From Phallusia mammillata (lineage: Eukaryota): DNA of 64,000 nt. The translations under genes were made by a program, and so were the position numbers. Where the stretch lies: positions 14,012,001 through 14,076,000 of the forward strand of contig OZ281501.1 in NCBI GenBank assembly GCA_965637545.1, read 5' to 3'. Positions 19,416 to 28,165 of the stretch are shown here, piece after piece. Below the pieces are notes generated by a model. That model ran no database searches and was not told the origin of the DNA. It was given only the letters and a program-made list of their open reading frames with translations. The number at the start of each line of letters is the position of its first letter. Within the stretch, counting starts at the first letter, position 1.

Positions 19416-22400
19416 CTATAGGTCCTTCCCCATTTCGTCAATTTCATTCACAACAAACTCCATATCACTACGTTCAACTTGGTCGTTTATGACAATCATA
19501 CGGAAGAAGTTAGGCAGATTTCCAAGCGGTTGATATCCCACTAACATTGACCCTCGCTCTGTCATACGTTCTTTAATCCTGGGTGGAATTGCTGCCACCT
19601 CGCGGCAAAACTCCTCGTTGTTAAGATTCCACTTGGTGTTGCGCAAGCGCTTCGGCAGGTACCAGAAACAAACGTTTGTGCATTCCGGCTAAACACATAT
19701 TTACAAGGAGTTATAAATGGTAATATTCCAATTGAAAAATATCGTTCGTACTATACAGTTAAGTGGAAACTTAAGTGAAAATATATATCGTTAAGTATAG
19801 TGTTGTTGGCATATTTTATAGACTATCCTTTTGCTTAACCGGCAATTGAACCCTTACCCTGTTGAAGAAACAACGGATCGAACGTCAAAACATCGGATGA
19901 GTTGTTTCAATTGCCGGTTGAGCAAAACGAAGTTTTAACATACGTGCGTTGAGTGTAAACAATAGATTCAATTTGGAATATCGAAATAACAAAATCTGTT
20001 AAAATTTGAACAGAAAGGTGGTTGGTGTGCTAACTTTGGGCACAAGGCAATTTTTTTCACTTTAAACTGTTGCCATATTTTTTTCTTAGAATTTTTACCT
20101 CCATTACTAGTTTAAAGCCTTCTCTTTTGCGGACGAGCTCGGACAAATATCTCGCGTTTTCAAATGCCTTTTCTACTCTTCGCTTTAAACCGTTTGTTCC
20201 CCGAGCTTTCCACATCAGCCACAGTTTTAAAGCATCAACCTGTAAAAGATAGCAGAAAGTGTTAAACTCGCACACATCAATTTAGCAATTGATTCAGATA
20301 ACAGTTAATCGTCTTGTATTTGCTAATTACCCTAAAAACGTTTTAACAGAAATATGCAAAAAAGACACATTTGGGACTTTTGATTTTCGAATCGAGGTTC
20401 AAAAAACATTGCACCCAGCAGCATTTGCTTTTTAAACAATAGCTACATTTAGTTTGTGTAGTTTCGTAAATTGCACCCGCTTTATTTTACTTCTAAATGC
20501 AGTTTTTTTTAATATTCGGCCTGGTGATGCATCGTTTTGACTTTGGGCTAGCTTTGGTGGAAATAAGCCTAAACTTTATACCTTTCGTCCACACTGAATC
20601 ACTTTGCTGCCAACATCAAATTCAGAGCTGTAGAGCGTCTTGTCTTGTTGAAACAGATAGGGAACGTGAATAGAGTGACACTCTTTCAGAATGTGCTGAA
20701 AAGATTAGAAAAAATATTAAACATTGCTTAACATTAAATCGACAAAACCGAGGGTAAAACAACGCATCATGACTACCAGGCAAATTCAAGCATTGGTTGC
20801 TAAGTATTGCATTTTTATATTTATATTTATGTATTGTTTTGCGCTTATATATCTTACCGGGTGTTTGGTTACAAAAACGCAACATTGCAATGGTGCCATC
20901 ATCATTTTGTGCGGATTCCACGTAACGGAATCAGACCTGTTAAAAAAATTAACATGATTTGACACCACGTCAGCTTTAAATTTTTGTATTCATATGATAG
21001 TATTAAATATAAGTTGTTAATTATACCTATGAATTCCGTCACATAGATGCCGGTGCTTGTCGGTAATCATTACTCCACCTCCCCAAGCTGCCTGCAAATA
21101 TATCAAAGTCGTTAACGCGAAAGTCAAAGATTTCCTAACGACGACATTTTGTGCGAAATTACATTGGCACAAATACCTGGATTTTTGCACTTTTATTTTA
21201 CTACCAATATAACTGTAGTTTTGTAAACTGAAAAAAAAACAAGACTTTATCCACCGTCTTACATCCACATGAAGCCATATTCCATATTTTTGACAAATGT
21301 CTGCGATTTCATTAAGTGGATCGAAAGCACCAAGGACGGTTGTTCCTGCGGTCGCTATTACAGCAATAGGAACAGCTCCCTTGAAAAAGCAAAAACAAAA
21401 ATGGTTTATAAAATCAAAACTTCACTATTTTACGTGTTTTACGTGTTCCAAGATTTCAAGATTCTTTCTAATGAATAAAAAATTATACTAACCTCGTTCT
21501 TTGCTGCCACTATTCGGCGCTCGAGATCCGCTGAATCCATACGTCCCCGCTCATCAGTGTTAACAGCAATAAGGTCGTCGGTTCCGATACCCATCAATGA
21601 AGCGTTTTTCTTGTTGGAATAATGACAATGCGAGCTCGTTAGCGCTACCATGCGGGGTAAGTTTCTCATTCCTTTCTCTTTTACTTGCGGAAATTTACTG
21701 AAACGTGCTAGGTTGAGTCCGAGCATGTTGGAATAAGAACCTCCTGTAAACAATCAAAAATACCTTGGGGATTTTTAGAGGTCAACACACGTTTATGCGA
21801 GTTATTTTTGGCAACCGTGATTTTCGGGCCACTTATAAAATGTGCCTACAGGCCAGCAGACCCTTAATCCGGCACTGGGCATGGTTCTCCTTGAACTTAG
21901 TGGCGCGCTTATTACGAGAATAATAGGAAGGGTTTCTTATACTAACCATTGTATCGTGGTCTTTGTACAACACCCTCCCCAGTCAAAAATTTTCTACACC
22001 TAACGCCCGGGCCATACCCGACCAACACTCGTTTATCTATCGTTTATGCCAGGATCGGCCGATTCATACTTAACAGAACATACGCCATATTTATATCTAT
22101 GGGTCTTACATGGTTTCGCCATACTAGGACCTAAAATGGCAAATGTGGTATAATTACACTTGGCGTAAAAAGATTAAGCAAGAAATTGCCATACTTGGGT
22201 GCCGAGAGTGAGGCGCCACACCTGTTCGGGTCTGGCGAAATGCTGTATGTGAGAGAATATTAAGCTTTTGGTTGACAATGTTATTATTGACACCATTTTC
22301 AAACGATAGTTTTAAAGCAATTCGTACGACGACTTGAATTGGTGAACATTAAAAAATTAAAAGTAATGCAATTAATGTGTGATCATTATCTTTTTGTACC

Positions 22401-25400
22401 TTTAGCGAGCCTAAAGTTGACGTGACGGTTCGTTAGCGCCTAATCTTTGACAACTCAGGGCTTCAATAACATAAATATTACACATATCACAAATCATGTC
22501 AACTGTTAAGTAAACGCAGTCGAACCCAAATTGCACAATACTTGCGCAATCATTTGACCTATGAACTTTACGAAACGTTGTTTGTCGTGATTGGTTAATG
22601 CTAATCTTGAACGTTTTGAATCCGGACTAAGAGCGATCACGTGTTGCTTGGCGGCGGGAAAGTTTTAATCAAGGAGGTTTACGAGTGTACGACGACTATA
22701 TTGTTTATTTTGGATCTGACTAAAAAACGTAGGTTAATGATGCCACCCGAAAAGGGTACAGCGCACAAAACATTCAGCAACTTAAAAAGAACTCGAAATG
22801 GAGAAGGAAGCAATCTTCGAAGAAAAGAAAACTACAAGCAGCAGCTATAATAATTGCCGAAAAGACCCAGAATATAAATGAAAATGATTTTGAATTGCTA
22901 AAAGATAACCAAGAAATAAGAAAGCGTGTTATGTTGCCATACAAAGAAAAATTTGTTGCTATTAATTTACTGCAAAATTAAAATTATGTACGGTTTCAAA
23001 TGATTTTACAAAGCTACGAAATGAAAAACTTTGTGTGCGTAAAATATGCTGATGGCACAAATGATGTTGTGCCTAAAGGATGGTTGGTTGGCACAGATGC
23101 ATGTAAATGGCCACCAGAGATTTGTAATGTGCAGGATTTAACCAAAAAAGAAGTTGTGGCAGAAGAAGAATGGTGCACATGCCCTTGTATTGTTCTCTTC
23201 CAAGCTAGTAAGTGTATTAAGATATTTGTTACAAGCATGGTTTACTTGATTTTTTCTTTGCAGGTATTTATGACCGATGTATCAAAAAAGGATACACCCA
23301 AAGTAATTTGGAGGACTCTGATTCAGATATATCCATTGAAGAAGAACCACATCAATTGAAGATTTCACCATTAATAAGAACAGACTCATCACAAAAAATG
23401 TATGTATATATCACTAGCTCCTCAATATTGCTAAGTTACATCTAATTGGTGGATTAATGTTGACTGCATTTTGTTGTGTACAAAATTCCATTTGTTTTAA
23501 CATATTATTTCTTTATCATAATTGTTGTTGTGAAAAATCAAATCAAATGGTTTAAATGATTTCTTTTGTGTTTAGAAATACATTTAAACGGCCATTACCA
23601 CCAAACCAAAGACCTTTAAATGGTAATGAATATAAATCCCTAATAGCCAAGATGGAAAGGATGGATGACAAACTGGAGACTATTGTGGAGATACTGAAAC
23701 AAAAAGTAGTGTGTGCAGCTGTGACAGAAACCATCTTTCCAGAGCCAGCTGACAATGAAAAAGATCTGGTAGAATTGATCACTCAAATTAATGTAAGCTG
23801 CATTTTCACCTAAAATGGAAATAAAATTTAATACTCTTAATTGTCAGGTTGTATGTTAACAAAATCTGTTTTTGTACCTATGCCAGCCCTACCAAATAAT
23901 GACAATTTAAACATTTTTATATGATTGATTATAATTGCATGTTTACATACTTGAAGGACAAGAAAAGAATCGGAAAAGTAATTGATATGGACGGCCTGCA
24001 AGGCACATTACGCAACTTCATCAAGTTGTTCATGACGAAAAATCTGGCACTTAAATTTTCCTGGAGTGGATTGGGTTGTGGAAGAAAACAGACAAAAATT
24101 TCTTTTAAAACTCATCCTTTGTTTGCCTTTTTTATAGGTAAGACATGATTATGTTTTGTTGTAATTAACATTGCAATGATGTGGATTTTAAAATTCAGGT
24201 CAATGAATTTTAGGTTTTTTTTTCTTTTTTTAGATGTGCTGCCATACACCAGACATAATGGTGCCAGTCACCAGGAAATAGCTACTGCAGTAAAAAGGGT
24301 CCTTCCAGGGGTTGGTGACTGGGATGGCGGTCATGTGAAATGGGTAAAAATCCAACAGCCAAATGAAAACCCAGGTGTTGACACTGACTCTTGCGATGAT
24401 GCATAAGTATTGTCTTTATGCCTGCCATGTGACTTAGAATGCTTTTGGCCGAGACATCCAAATTGTGTGTTCTATGCTATGTGCTGGCCATCTAAACTGT
24501 TTGTCTAATGCTTTGTACCGGCCCTCCTAACTGTGTGTCTTATGCTTTGCAAAGGCCATCTAAACTGTGTGTCTTATGCTTAGCAAAGGCCATCCAAACT
24601 GTGTGTCTTATGCTTTGCACAGGCCATCTAAACTGTGTGTCTTATCACTCTTATGCTTTGCATCAGCCATCCTAACTGTGTGTGTTATACTTTGCACAGG
24701 CCATCTAAACTGTGTGGCTTATGCTTTGCACAGGACATCTAAACTGTGTGTCTTATTCTTTGCATCAGCCATCCTAGCTGTGTGTGTTATACTTTGCACA
24801 GGCCATCCAAACTGTGTGTCTTATGCTTTGCACAGGCCATCTTAACTGTGTGTCTTATGCTTTGCACAGGCCATCTAAACTGTGTGGCTTATGCTTTGCA
24901 CAGGCCATCTAAACTGTGTGGCTTATGCTTTGCACAGGCCATCTTAACTGTGTGTCTTATGCTTTGCACAGGCCATCTAAACTGTGTGTCTTATGCTTTA
25001 CACAGGCCATCTTAACTTTGTGGCTTATGCTTTGCACAGGCCATCCTAACTGTGTGTGTTATACTTTGCACAGGCCATCTAAACCGTGTGTCTTATTCTT
25101 TGCACAGGCCATCTAAACTGTGTGGCTTATGCTTTGCACAGGCCATCCTAACTGTGTGTGTTATACTTTGCACAGGCCATCTAAACTGTGTGTCTTATCA
25201 CTCTTATGCTTTGCATCAGCCATCCAAACTGTGTGTCTTATGCTTTTCGCAGGCCATCCAAACTGTGTGTCTTATGCTTTTCGCAGGACATTCAAACTGT
25301 GTGTCTTATGCTTTGCCCAGGCCATCCATCAAATCCAGGCGTCCTTTATATTTCGTTTTGTTCTTCTTTTTAATACATTGTCAGGAAATATTATTGGAAG

Positions 25401-28165
25401 TGTCATATTGAAAGGCGGCAAAGTTTGGCAGTGCCAAGGATAATATATGATTGGTTATGTGTGGTACAAACAATACTTAAATGAGGACCTAGTATGGCGG
25501 AAAACCGGGCCGTCATACGTGGTTATTATCTTAGGCCGAGCGTACGGCGTCGTGTATGAACCAAACATAACTGGAACGTTCGGCGCCAAGCTCGAAGTGT
25601 TTCATTGTTGAACATACGCCACACATATATGCCAACTTAAGCAAGGCACCCAGGTGCCGCCCATGTGAGGCTGCCAAGCGTTACCAAACATAATTATGCT
25701 TGGCCCGGACATAAATTTTTGACTGGGTCCTGTTACATTACGCAATAGATAAAAAGCTGTGAAAACCGCATCTCGAAAAAGCTATAAAAAGCGTATTAAG
25801 TTGTTTGCAACGTTGTTTTTTTCGTACTCACCAAGGTATACTGAGGTTTAAATAGTTGATCTACTCAAGTTTACACGTAGTTACCTGGTGAAAATGTTCC
25901 ATCTCCGTTCTCGTATCCAATGATGTCGCAAAATTTTTTCAGTAAAACTCTTTCCATTAAAACAAAAACTGGAGCGACTTCATATGTGTATCTAAACAAA
26001 TCAGCCAGGAGTTAAACGAATTTTTCAAACTGATAATGCTTGTTTTAATCAATGATATTGATCAGAATGCTTTCGCAATTTACTTAAAGTAGAGTGAATA
26101 CAAATACTTTAGGCAGTAAGTTATAATCTATAAAGATGACCACTCTGTAAAATATCCTGCAGTGATTGCTTTTATTTCAATATGAGTCGATTATGATTTT
26201 CTTTTTGTAAATAGAGTCCATATTTATTAAAAGTCTTTGCGTTAGTTTTCTAGTTATTTTACTTACATAGATGGGTTAAGTACATCGGTCATAATTTGTC
26301 CAACAAAACCGTACGGATCAAGTCCCGCATAAAGTTGGTTAAAAAAGTGTGGGTGACCTGAAATTTGAAACATCTTCATTATTACGACTTATATGGTGAT
26401 GATTTGCCTAACCATACAGTAAACATGCTTATCGCTGCAAAAAACGGCCATTTGGCCCAATGAAAATTGTTTTTGTTGTTGTAGGGTTACGACGTTTTGT
26501 TATGAGTGGTTGTTAGCAGCAAATTGGTGTTTCATCTCTTTAGTTAGAAATTAGTTTGCGCACGGACCTGTCAAGTTTACTTTGTCAGGCCGAACTTTCA
26601 GGGTCGGGTTCGGTCTTATAAGTTAAAAATATACGGACTTAATTCACCCCAACTTCACACACTGCACTTGCTTAAAACCGGGCCGGGTTTTGGGCTATTA
26701 CTTTCGTGCGGGGTTCGGGACCCTATTTCGGGCCTCTACACTTTTTCACAATAAGCAGAAATTGTTCCTATCGTGCCGAGGGGAATCACCGAATCACACA
26801 ATTCATATTGGTAGTGCATACATAAGAATGTGGTGGGTTTGTCGCTATCGTGTGCTTTTAGCGAGGTCTGACTGACGGTAGAGCTACTAACACCATAACG
26901 AGAATCAGAACTTCGCTTTCACAAGGGGGCGTAAAGAGCTGAATTTTTATTTAGCGGCTATAAATGGTTTGGGTTGGGAAATATTTACATAAAATTTTTC
27001 CATTAATAACTAATGTTTTGGGTTAGTTTTATTGAATTTTAAGTGCTAATACCTTACCTTGACCCTAATAGCCCTAACCGTGAGCATTTTTGGAGATATA
27101 CCCAATCAAATTTGGGGGTAGATTCTCATTATGGTGTTAGTAGCTCTACCCTGACTGACAGACTTTGTGATTGCTAAGTTGCCGGCCGGTCTACAAAGCA
27201 GAACATGTTTAACCGTTAACTAAGGAAGTTCAGCAACGAAATGATGAAAGAAATCACGCGTTCATTTTATTACTTGTTGTTTCCCAGACTGGGCAACTTG
27301 CAAATTTTAATGGCGTGGTTTACGAACCCGGATGCACTCTGGTCAATCATTTCGGTTTCGAGAAATGCGTTGTTGTGTTTTGGTCTTTACAGTCATGATG
27401 ATTTGCACTTATCAGCCGTTTTTACGTCTCTTATAACTGAATAGATTGCATCACCACTTAGAGGTCTAAGTGTCTGAATGATGAGGCAATCTTTTCAGTT
27501 GAAAGCAGAAGCTGGAAATTTACCAGCTTACGTGACCGTTATCACGTTGTTTATTTTCGCCGAAATCTTTTCACAACATACCAAGGTTAACTGGATGTCA
27601 AGTCATTTTTCAACGCCAAGAGGTATGCTGCCTGGGATGGCAATGCAACAAACGTGGTTGTAATATTCTCCAACTTAAACGTTGCATATACAAGTATTGA
27701 GCTATTACATGACTATTCAGCTCACACAAAAAAACTGTAACTTTGCGTCTTTAGTCCACTAGGAACTATTCTTGGATGAATATATACGTTCCTGTAGTTG
27801 TTTAACGAGCTTTGTATACTAAACCGTTAAAGAATTGTCAAAAATATGAAAGTTTAACGCAACAAACCTGTTTTTACGCTGTAGTCAAAAACTTGCTGGC
27901 ACAACTGCAATAACATTTCATGATTCTCCGGTTCATCGTAAACTTTAAGATCAATACATTTCTCCAGTTCGTTCGGGGTTTTGAAGTTTATCACTGGGGT
28001 CTTGCGATCCTTTATTTTCTCAAGTCCCTCTCTTATGGTCAGTTCCAGTGCTTTTTGTACAAACTTGTCAACGTCGTCCACAACTCCGTTTGTTGTTTTG
28101 AAATGTTTTAACTGCTCCAACGAATCGCCGTTGCATTGCGCATTGCTGTAGCCGTTTGTGGCCAT
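19416..28165 (-). CDS. GADL1: Acidic amino acid decarboxylase, GADL1/CSAD type (PLP-dependent group II)
   Basis: Ten coding exons: 28165-27868, 26357-26267, 25991-25885, 21743-21493, 21379-21263, 21091-21027, 20936-20858, 20695-20582, 20239-20099, 19688-19416; all phases consistent. Motifs [50 protein letters not shown] (PLP lysine), YLFQQDK, QCGRKVD, GYQP..NFFR. Symbol denotes closest type, not proven orthology. Confidence 0.9.
23000..24406 (+). CDS. Intact 5-exon transposon-borne gene, ~304 aa, DUF4806-like accessory protein
   Basis: Exons 23000-23207, 23264-23399, 23576-23792, 23957-24137 and 24234-24406 (915 nt) splice in frame with canonical GT-AG. N-terminal FVCVKY..DVVP..WL..C.WPP, central coiled-coil-like stretch, KFSWSG and C-terminal DWDGG resemble DUF4806 proteins (recognised from memory, needs HMM check). 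Start codon uncertain (23000 or 23021). Confidence 0.7.
24440..25327. repeat. 34-bp tandem array, about 25 units
   Basis: Consensus TGTGTGTCTTATGCTTTGCACAGGCCATCTAAAC; period confirmed (CCATCT at 24871 and 24905); two units carry the same 9-bp insertion CACTCTTAT (~24646 and ~25199). Confidence 0.95.
26585..26740. repeat. Degenerate copy of the GGGTTCGGG-rich MITE family
   Basis: Shares GGGTCGGGTTCGG / CCGGGCCGGGTTTTGGGCT / TATTTCGGGCC motifs with 49269-49535 and 8011-8214; termini lost. Confidence 0.45.
26877..27150. mobile_element. MITE with 30-bp TIR and 9-bp TSD (Merlin- or Mutator-type)
   Basis: TIR GGTAGAGCTACTAACACCATAA(C/T)GAGAATC (1 mismatch); perfect TSD ctgactgac at 26868-26876 and 27151-27159. 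Confidence 0.9.

Follow-up and report, generated by a model that had tools for sequence, protein, structure and literature searches.

A probable CMC-type transposon copy of Phallusia mammillata that has lost its transposase and keeps a second gene with a predicted BEN domain

The element at the locus and its copies

The DNA analysed here, called the window, is a stretch of 64,000 nucleotides from the ascidian Phallusia mammillata (assembly GCA_965637545.1, contig OZ281501.1; C8:14012001-14076000 of the 240-Mb genome), and coordinates are window positions unless named otherwise. At 21978-25727 it holds a DNA transposon of 3,750 bp, which lies antisense in an intron of a host gene and carries a five-exon gene, here called ORF2. 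The original prediction, made from the letters of the window alone, had described a CACTA/EnSpm-like element with an intact spliced cargo gene and no transposase, and all of the anatomy that it listed is present. The terminal inverted repeats (TIRs) are perfect, the left arm CCCAGTCAAAAATTT (21978-21992, plus strand) being 100% complementary over its 15 nt to the right arm (25713-25727, minus strand), and they are bordered by a 2-bp target-site duplication (TSD), TC, at 21976-21977 and 25728-25729. Further in, a subterminal motif with the core CCATACTAGG (22114-22132, plus strand) forms a 19-nt inverted pair, 89% matched, with 25484-25502 on the minus strand; a related copy stands at 22188, and blocks of the form CCATACT(A/T)GG lie near both element ends. 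Both the core and the blocks are partly kept in a diverged sister element, L056, and the motif at 22114-22132 may be a binding site. The transposase gene survives in the window copy as remnants at 22737-22981 (plus strand), comprising N-terminal codons with a 1-nt frameshift, a deletion junction between 22869 and 22881 and the last ~30 codons, which end in TAA at 22979-22981; no transposase open reading frame (ORF) was found beyond them. ORF2 follows, and after it a 34-bp minisatellite (24455-25326, plus strand; 25.1 units, 83% matches), also as predicted.

Copy numbers were taken from a DNA search of the genome and not from exact counts of the TIR 15-mer, which gave 37 hits (~28 of them paired) against 31 for a reversed control and are weak as a count. 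The search found at least 12 near-full copies without a transposase, 3.6-4.8 kb long, which are 91-98% identical over the whole element and up to 99.8% identical over the part outside the array. All copies terminate at CCCAGTC...GACTGGG and, when two longer elements are included, the 2-bp flanks match in 12 of 14 (TA in seven, AT in two, and one each of TC, GT, TT and AA). The same termini in 14 elements, 12 of them with matching flanks, place the feature far beyond chance. Over the non-array part, the window copy forms the youngest set with L002 and L005 (99.5-99.8% identical); L003 and L004 form a second young set and L006, L007 and L008 a third, whose exon-2 insertion and stop are also present in L010, and an older set is ~96% identical. 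Short copies have between 17 and 52 array units, long elements ~8. The copy with 52 units, L004 (C4:27389829-27394623), is 4.8 kb long, and its flanks, CT and TG, do not match; on the left the flank is similar to that of L008, and both may lie in copies of another repeat.

Parent elements and the class of the transposase

Two longer elements, L032 (C7, 5,776 bp) and L033 (C4), have the same TIRs as the window copy but are longer by 1.8 kb between element positions 892 and 904, and this stretch completes an ORF of ~700 aa; the same five ORF2 exons follow. The stretch that is absent from the window copy corresponds to L032 2410-4224, and because the same junction is present in all short copies, a single deletion founded the short family. 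The window copy has the make-up of a non-autonomous deletion derivative, sharing its ends with a longer, transposase-encoding element and missing an internal part. Both L032 and L033 are dead, since their transposase frames shift at the same point, and an insertion of ~570 bp splits ORF2 exon 1 in L032 (4425-4994) and, at the same place, in L033. Eight element bases (1094-1101) are repeated to the left and right of this insertion, which has the look of a different transposon and its 8-bp TSD.

One sister element, L056 3509-9143 (C3:13992508-13998142), looks complete: it encodes, on the minus strand at L056 5863-7932, an intact transposase of 690 aa, 59% identical, and its five ORF2 exons align without stops. 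It is flanked by a TSD of TT and has the ends CCCAGTCAGAAATTA and CCCAGGCAAAAATTT, and its 3' end differs from that of the window copy by one mismatch in 26 nt. L056 may be taken as the best candidate for a trans-acting source of the movement of the short copies. A word-based protein search with the L056 read-through ORF gave no matches. Three further relatives of ~6.3 kb lie 60-67 kb apart (L031 1206-7536, at C1:23815705-23822035, and others near C1:23883106 and C1:23943004). Both ends of these consist of the family's left 318 bp in inverted orientation, and they hold a decayed transposase and an inserted reverse-transcriptase/GIY-YIG ORF, Penelope-like in look; their spacing suggests a segmental triplication.

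In a database search the transposase had 580 relatives, from ascidians, fishes, a holothurian, insects and a barnacle. Twelve homologues drawn from these groups share the invariant residues D189, D272, C291-x2-C294, H492-x3-H496 and E516, and 11 of the 12 match DUF4218; for L032, the match lies in the C-terminal half and scores 28.6 bits against a cut-off of 27 bits. Judged by its sequence, the parent transposase is of the CMC DDE type, an assignment that belongs to the long relatives and not to the window copy, which has lost the gene; the prediction of a CMC/EnSpm-type element without a transposase holds in this sense. Elements of the CMC clade have TSDs of 2-5 bp, and the 2-bp TSD of the family falls within this range. 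The stricter name CACTA did not survive: the termini are CCCAG rather than CACTA, the TSD is 2 bp rather than the 3 bp of plant CACTA/EnSpm elements, and the Transposase_21 match of the plant elements (PF02992) is missing, L032, L056 and L057 giving no hit at E <= 1 and the 12 aligned homologues no hit at E <= 0.1. Matches to DUF1258 were not significant (E 0.15 and 0.0059, single members), and sequence searches of the PDB, with the transposase profile and with an ORF2 profile, returned nothing meaningful.

The termini are similar to those of zebrafish elements. The CMC-EnSpm element EnSpm-N49B has the 15-bp TIR CACTCAAAAAAATGA and a 2-bp TSD (PMC13189230); from base 3, the window TIR reads CAGTCAAAAATTT, close to this sequence, and its core CAGTCAAAAA resembles the zebrafish CACTCAAAAA. 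The zebrafish elements EnSpm-N49 and EnSpm-N49B thus share with the Phallusia family a 15-bp TIR with a CA(C/G)TCAAAAA core, a 2-bp TSD and non-autonomous copies moved by a larger autonomous element (PMC13189230), and fish proteins are among the homologues of the ascidian transposase. They differ in that the Phallusia TIR has an extra CC outside the CAGTC core and in that the Phallusia short copies retain a whole protein-coding gene.

ORF2: gene model, predicted fold and selection

The five exons of ORF2 lie on the plus strand at 23021-23207, 23264-23399, 23576-23792, 23957-24137 and 24234-24406, the last ending in a TAA stop. Each is open and has GT/AG borders, and full-length proteins of Phallusia, Styela and Ciona can be aligned with the five peptides in their order, with every junction spanned. 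The prediction of a five-exon frame free of stops and frameshifts was correct, whereas its length of 915 nt, from the in-frame ATG at 23000, was not: that start is not conserved, and most other copies have a stop at codon 6 of the extension. It is the ATG at 23021 that is conserved, and the frame from there is 894 nt long and codes for 297 aa.

ORF2 is tied to the transposase in several ways. At 20 transposase loci in the genome whose proteins are 35-60% identical, an exon-4-like match follows 2-5 kb further downstream on the transposase strand; the five-exon layout recurs in L056 and L057, and the ORF2 ATG stands ~30-40 nt past the transposase stop codon. In Clavelina lepadiformis, the transposase of the gene model P0001 runs into the exon-1 domain (41% identity, E 6e-14). 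P0126 and P0133, two proteins of Phallusia mammillata, match first exons that closely follow transposase ORFs in L043 and L053 (95-97%), and a Phallusia transposase fragment maps to L044 at 98%; these matches by themselves assign the genome to Phallusia mammillata or a near relative. As ORF2 follows the transposase in the parent and in diverged loci, the gene is the family's own second gene and not, as had been proposed, a cargo gene. Three exon-4-like matches stand in long open frames of 224, 134 and 134 aa (C1:28675868-28676026, C6:22864824-22864982 and C1:10750401-10750559, respectively); no transposase match is listed near them, and they may be intron-less or solo BEN/DUF4806 genes.

For domain assignment, the window exons were searched singly, and the fold of the whole protein was taken from the natural homologue P0126, with the window exons as separate rows of the alignment. 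The P0126 model (mean predicted local distance difference test score, pLDDT, 81.8) consists of a beta barrel (residues 1-79; ARID4B Tudor domain, Z 5.4), a disordered segment without a structural match (82-129), a single long helix that matches coiled coils (135-169) and a helical domain that matches BEN domains (180-290). For this last domain, the top 13 Foldseek matches are all BEN domains, and exhaustive alignment ranks BEND6 first (Z 10.0, root-mean-square deviation (rmsd) 2.6 Å, 89/92 residues), followed by BANP (6.8), Bsg25A (6.6), NACC1 (6.1) and BEND3 (5.7), so that the top five are again all BEN. The C-terminal domain of ORF2 is therefore predicted with some assurance to have the BEN fold. 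DUF4806 scores 17.4 bits in window exon 4 alone and 25.5 bits in P0126, against the Pfam gathering cut-off of 25 bits, and is matched by 21 of 38 family members at E <= 0.1; in the ESM Atlas, nearly every neighbour of P0126 is an arthropod or chordate DUF4806 cluster. The guess of a DUF4806 or BEN protein in the original prediction was a good one. Window exon 1, folded alone (pLDDT 89.6), aligns to ARID4B (Z 5.7, rmsd 1.2, 44 residues), RBBP1 (5.0) and JMJD2C (4.7), the next match being at 2.6; Foldseek found no matches for this model, and Pfam gave no hit for the exon.

ORF2 can accordingly be described as a predicted Tudor-like barrel, a coiled coil and a BEN/DUF4806 DNA-binding domain. In these terms, exon 1 would encode the barrel; exon 2 a helix and an acidic/serine-rich linker, which aligns to the full-length homologues; exon 3 a basic stretch, the long helix of the coiled coil and the first part of the BEN region; exon 4 the core of the DUF4806/BEN domain; and exon 5 the end of that domain and an acidic tail.

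The comparison of copies proposed with the original prediction gave two different pictures at two depths. Between the window lineage and the transposase-bearing L016 lineage, the ratio of nonsynonymous to synonymous substitution (dN/dS) is 0.19 at a dS of 0.33, and the exons are 89.7% identical compared with 77.9% for the introns, a pattern that indicates purifying selection on ORF2 between the sublineages. Within the short family, dN/dS is 0.4-0.9, on few differences, and decay looks near neutral. Only the youngest trio (window, L002 and L005) has an intact ORF2, the other nine of the 12 short copies being broken. Several of these (L006-8 and L010-12) have in common a CGA-to-TGA stop at codon 67, and L006-8 and L010 also share a 4-nt insertion in exon 2, yet these four stand at different sites, each with its own TSD. 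As a subfamily with a broken ORF2 still transposed, the element does not require an intact ORF2 in cis. The window copy alone has a CGG-to-TGG change (R to W) in the tail, at 24331-24333. Both this change and the codon-67 stop are CpG transitions, which hints at methylation-driven decay of the copies.

Proposed mechanism, alternative readings and setting

We consider it very probable that the element in the window is a non-autonomous, internally deleted copy of a two-gene, CMC-type (EnSpm-like) cut-and-paste transposon of an ascidian; of the two alternatives in the original prediction, the evidence favours a young non-autonomous family that keeps the accessory gene only. The parent is an element of ~5.8 kb with an intronless gene for a DDE transposase of ~700 aa and, 30-40 nt further on, the five-exon ORF2. 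A single 1.8-kb deletion, perhaps through abortive gap repair, took out the interior of the transposase gene, after which the resulting element of 3.6-4.8 kb reached at least 12 sites, mobilised in trans. In the mechanism that we propose, a related autonomous element would supply the transposase, which would bind the TIRs and cut and paste the short copies, with a 2-bp staggered cut at the target. ORF2 may dimerise through its helix and bind DNA through the BEN domain, the CCATACT(A/T)GG blocks being a plausible target, and the Tudor-like barrel might read chromatin. We infer that ORF2 is the functional counterpart, in this clade, of accessory DNA-binding proteins such as TnpA of maize En/Spm and the Myb-like protein of Harbinger; it would then be a dimer that binds specific sequences in the subterminal DNA of its own element, or binds chromatin, and so helps or regulates transposition. 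The short gap between the two genes suggests that they are co-transcribed; in a tunicate, spliced-leader trans-splicing could resolve such a transcript.

Several findings weigh against this interpretation or against parts of it. Pfam support for the transposase comes from a single borderline family, DUF4218, and the 5'-CA...TG-3' termini of most CMC elements are replaced in every copy by CCCAGTC...GACTGGG. No intact transposase of the exact family is present in the two same-family long copies, with their frameshift and their insertion in ORF2 exon 1. Transcription of the window copy and its four splice junctions are supported only through homology to full-length proteins, and there is no AATAAA or ATTAAA between the ORF2 stop and the right end of the element (24407-25727). 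The Tudor-like assignment of exon 1, with Z values below 6, is suggestive and not firm, and binding of ORF2 to the element ends is putative.

The best-surviving alternative, which we nevertheless think improbable, is that ORF2-only elements were kept as useful to the family or the host: the deletion would have set ORF2 immediately behind the promoter of the element, and the copies would act as dedicated suppliers of a BEN protein, whether this helps, represses or counters silencing. Host BEN genes might have begun in such a way. It would account for a single deletion that spared ORF2 exactly and gave all short copies, for the intact state of the youngest copies and for purifying selection between sublineages, and the 37 exact TIR hits (~28 paired) include no shorter derivatives with the same 15-bp ends that resemble miniature inverted-repeat transposable elements. 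Against these points stand the frameshifted and stopped subfamily that spread to four sites, the within-family dN/dS of 0.4-0.9 on few changes and the nine of 12 copies that are broken.

That the window copy is an early domesticated gene used by the host, the other alternative in the original prediction, seems to us very unlikely. The ORF is intact, has introns and sits inside a host gene, but two further copies, 99.5-99.8% identical and inserted at unrelated sites, are just as intact, the element has perfect TIRs and a perfect TSD and is antisense in the intron, and the tail of the window copy has its private R-to-W change. All three intact copies have TIRs and 2-bp flanks (the C6 pair unmatched), the rest are broken, and an ORF of 894 nt is expected to be intact by chance at the given divergence. 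The intactness of the window copy thus reflects its youth and not domestication. Least probable of all is capture of a host gene as cargo by Pack-type transduplication, which the missing transposase and a gene with normal introns and GT/AG borders might suggest, but which would leave unexplained the same five-exon gene after the transposase in the parent and in sister families (transposases 35-60% identical), the same arrangement in Clavelina and the absence of any single-copy host parent among the loci seen.

A two-gene transposon with deletion derivatives invites comparison with maize En/Spm (CACTA), which encodes the transposase TnpD and the accessory protein TnpA and gives rise to the dSpm deletion derivatives. 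Both systems combine a DDE transposase with a DUF4218 region and a DNA-binding protein, and both have subterminal repeats and internal-deletion derivatives. The plant elements differ in their 3-bp TSD, their CACTA termini, their gene order and their intron layout, and no relatedness of TnpA to ORF2, with its Tudor-like and BEN domains, was found. The PIF/Harbinger elements (of which the Nuwa lineage is mentioned in PMC12730594) are also two-gene elements, with a separate Myb-like DNA-binding accessory gene beside the transposase, but belong to another transposase superfamily and have another TSD and another DNA-binding fold. The BEN proteins BEND6, BANP, Insv, Bsg25A and NACC1 have the fold predicted for the C-terminal domain of ORF2 (Z 10.0 to BEND6), but are host transcription or chromatin factors, whereas ORF2 is encoded by a mobile element and adds a Tudor-like domain and a coiled coil. 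DUF4806 is reported to be one of the subtypes of BEN (PMC10723407 and PMC10789644, both citing Pan et al. 2023) and is elsewhere treated as an unexplained expanded domain (PMC7642931, PMC13270666); in the literature searched it appears in these two guises, and a link to a transposon was not found.

As an element it is unremarkable, since it represents a new family, low in copy number and still young, within a superfamily already known. Of more use is what the second gene encodes, namely a predicted BEN/DUF4806 DNA-binding protein with a Tudor-like domain, which is the constant partner of this transposase clade. A wider claim, that the Tudor-coiled-coil-BEN protein is a general, undescribed accessory factor of a large animal CMC clade and that ORF2-only copies are functional suppliers or regulators and raw material for host BEN/DUF4806 genes, is speculative and in our view rather unlikely. 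If such a factor were general, it would explain why DUF4806 is reported to be expanded in Hydra and beetles and to form gene clusters in zebrafish; many of the 'uncharacterised DUF4806 genes' annotated in animals would be transposon genes, and a TnpA-like component open to testing would be added to animal CMC elements. The family lends itself to study as a natural experiment, since it has subfamilies with intact and with broken ORF2, parents of the same family that are dead, and an intact sister element whose ends are nearly identical.

The host gene runs on the minus strand. An exon at 21475-21747, downstream of the insertion, matches a pyridoxal phosphate (PLP) decarboxylase (Pfam profile positions 109-201), and upstream of it an ORF at 25871-25999 contains an exon for the N-terminal part, recognised by eye from a conserved decarboxylase motif; the coordinates given are those of the ORF. 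Further PLP-decarboxylase exons on the same strand lie below 21475-21747 and within the ORFs 26263-26379 and 27854-28165. The element had been predicted to lie antisense in a GADL1 intron; the antisense position between decarboxylase exons stands, but GADL1 itself is not established, one compared exon scoring GAD2 > CSAD > GADL1, and by these matches the host gene is a PLP decarboxylase of the GAD/CSAD/GADL1 type. The element fills most of the 4.1-kb intron (21748-25870), which would be ~370 bp long without it, making the insertion an eleven-fold enlargement. Elsewhere in the genome, two dense clusters of PLP-decarboxylase (PF00282) exon matches, several with stops, lie at C6:8018176-8176382 and C6:18375007-18422551 and look like tandem GAD/CSAD-like genes and pseudogenes.

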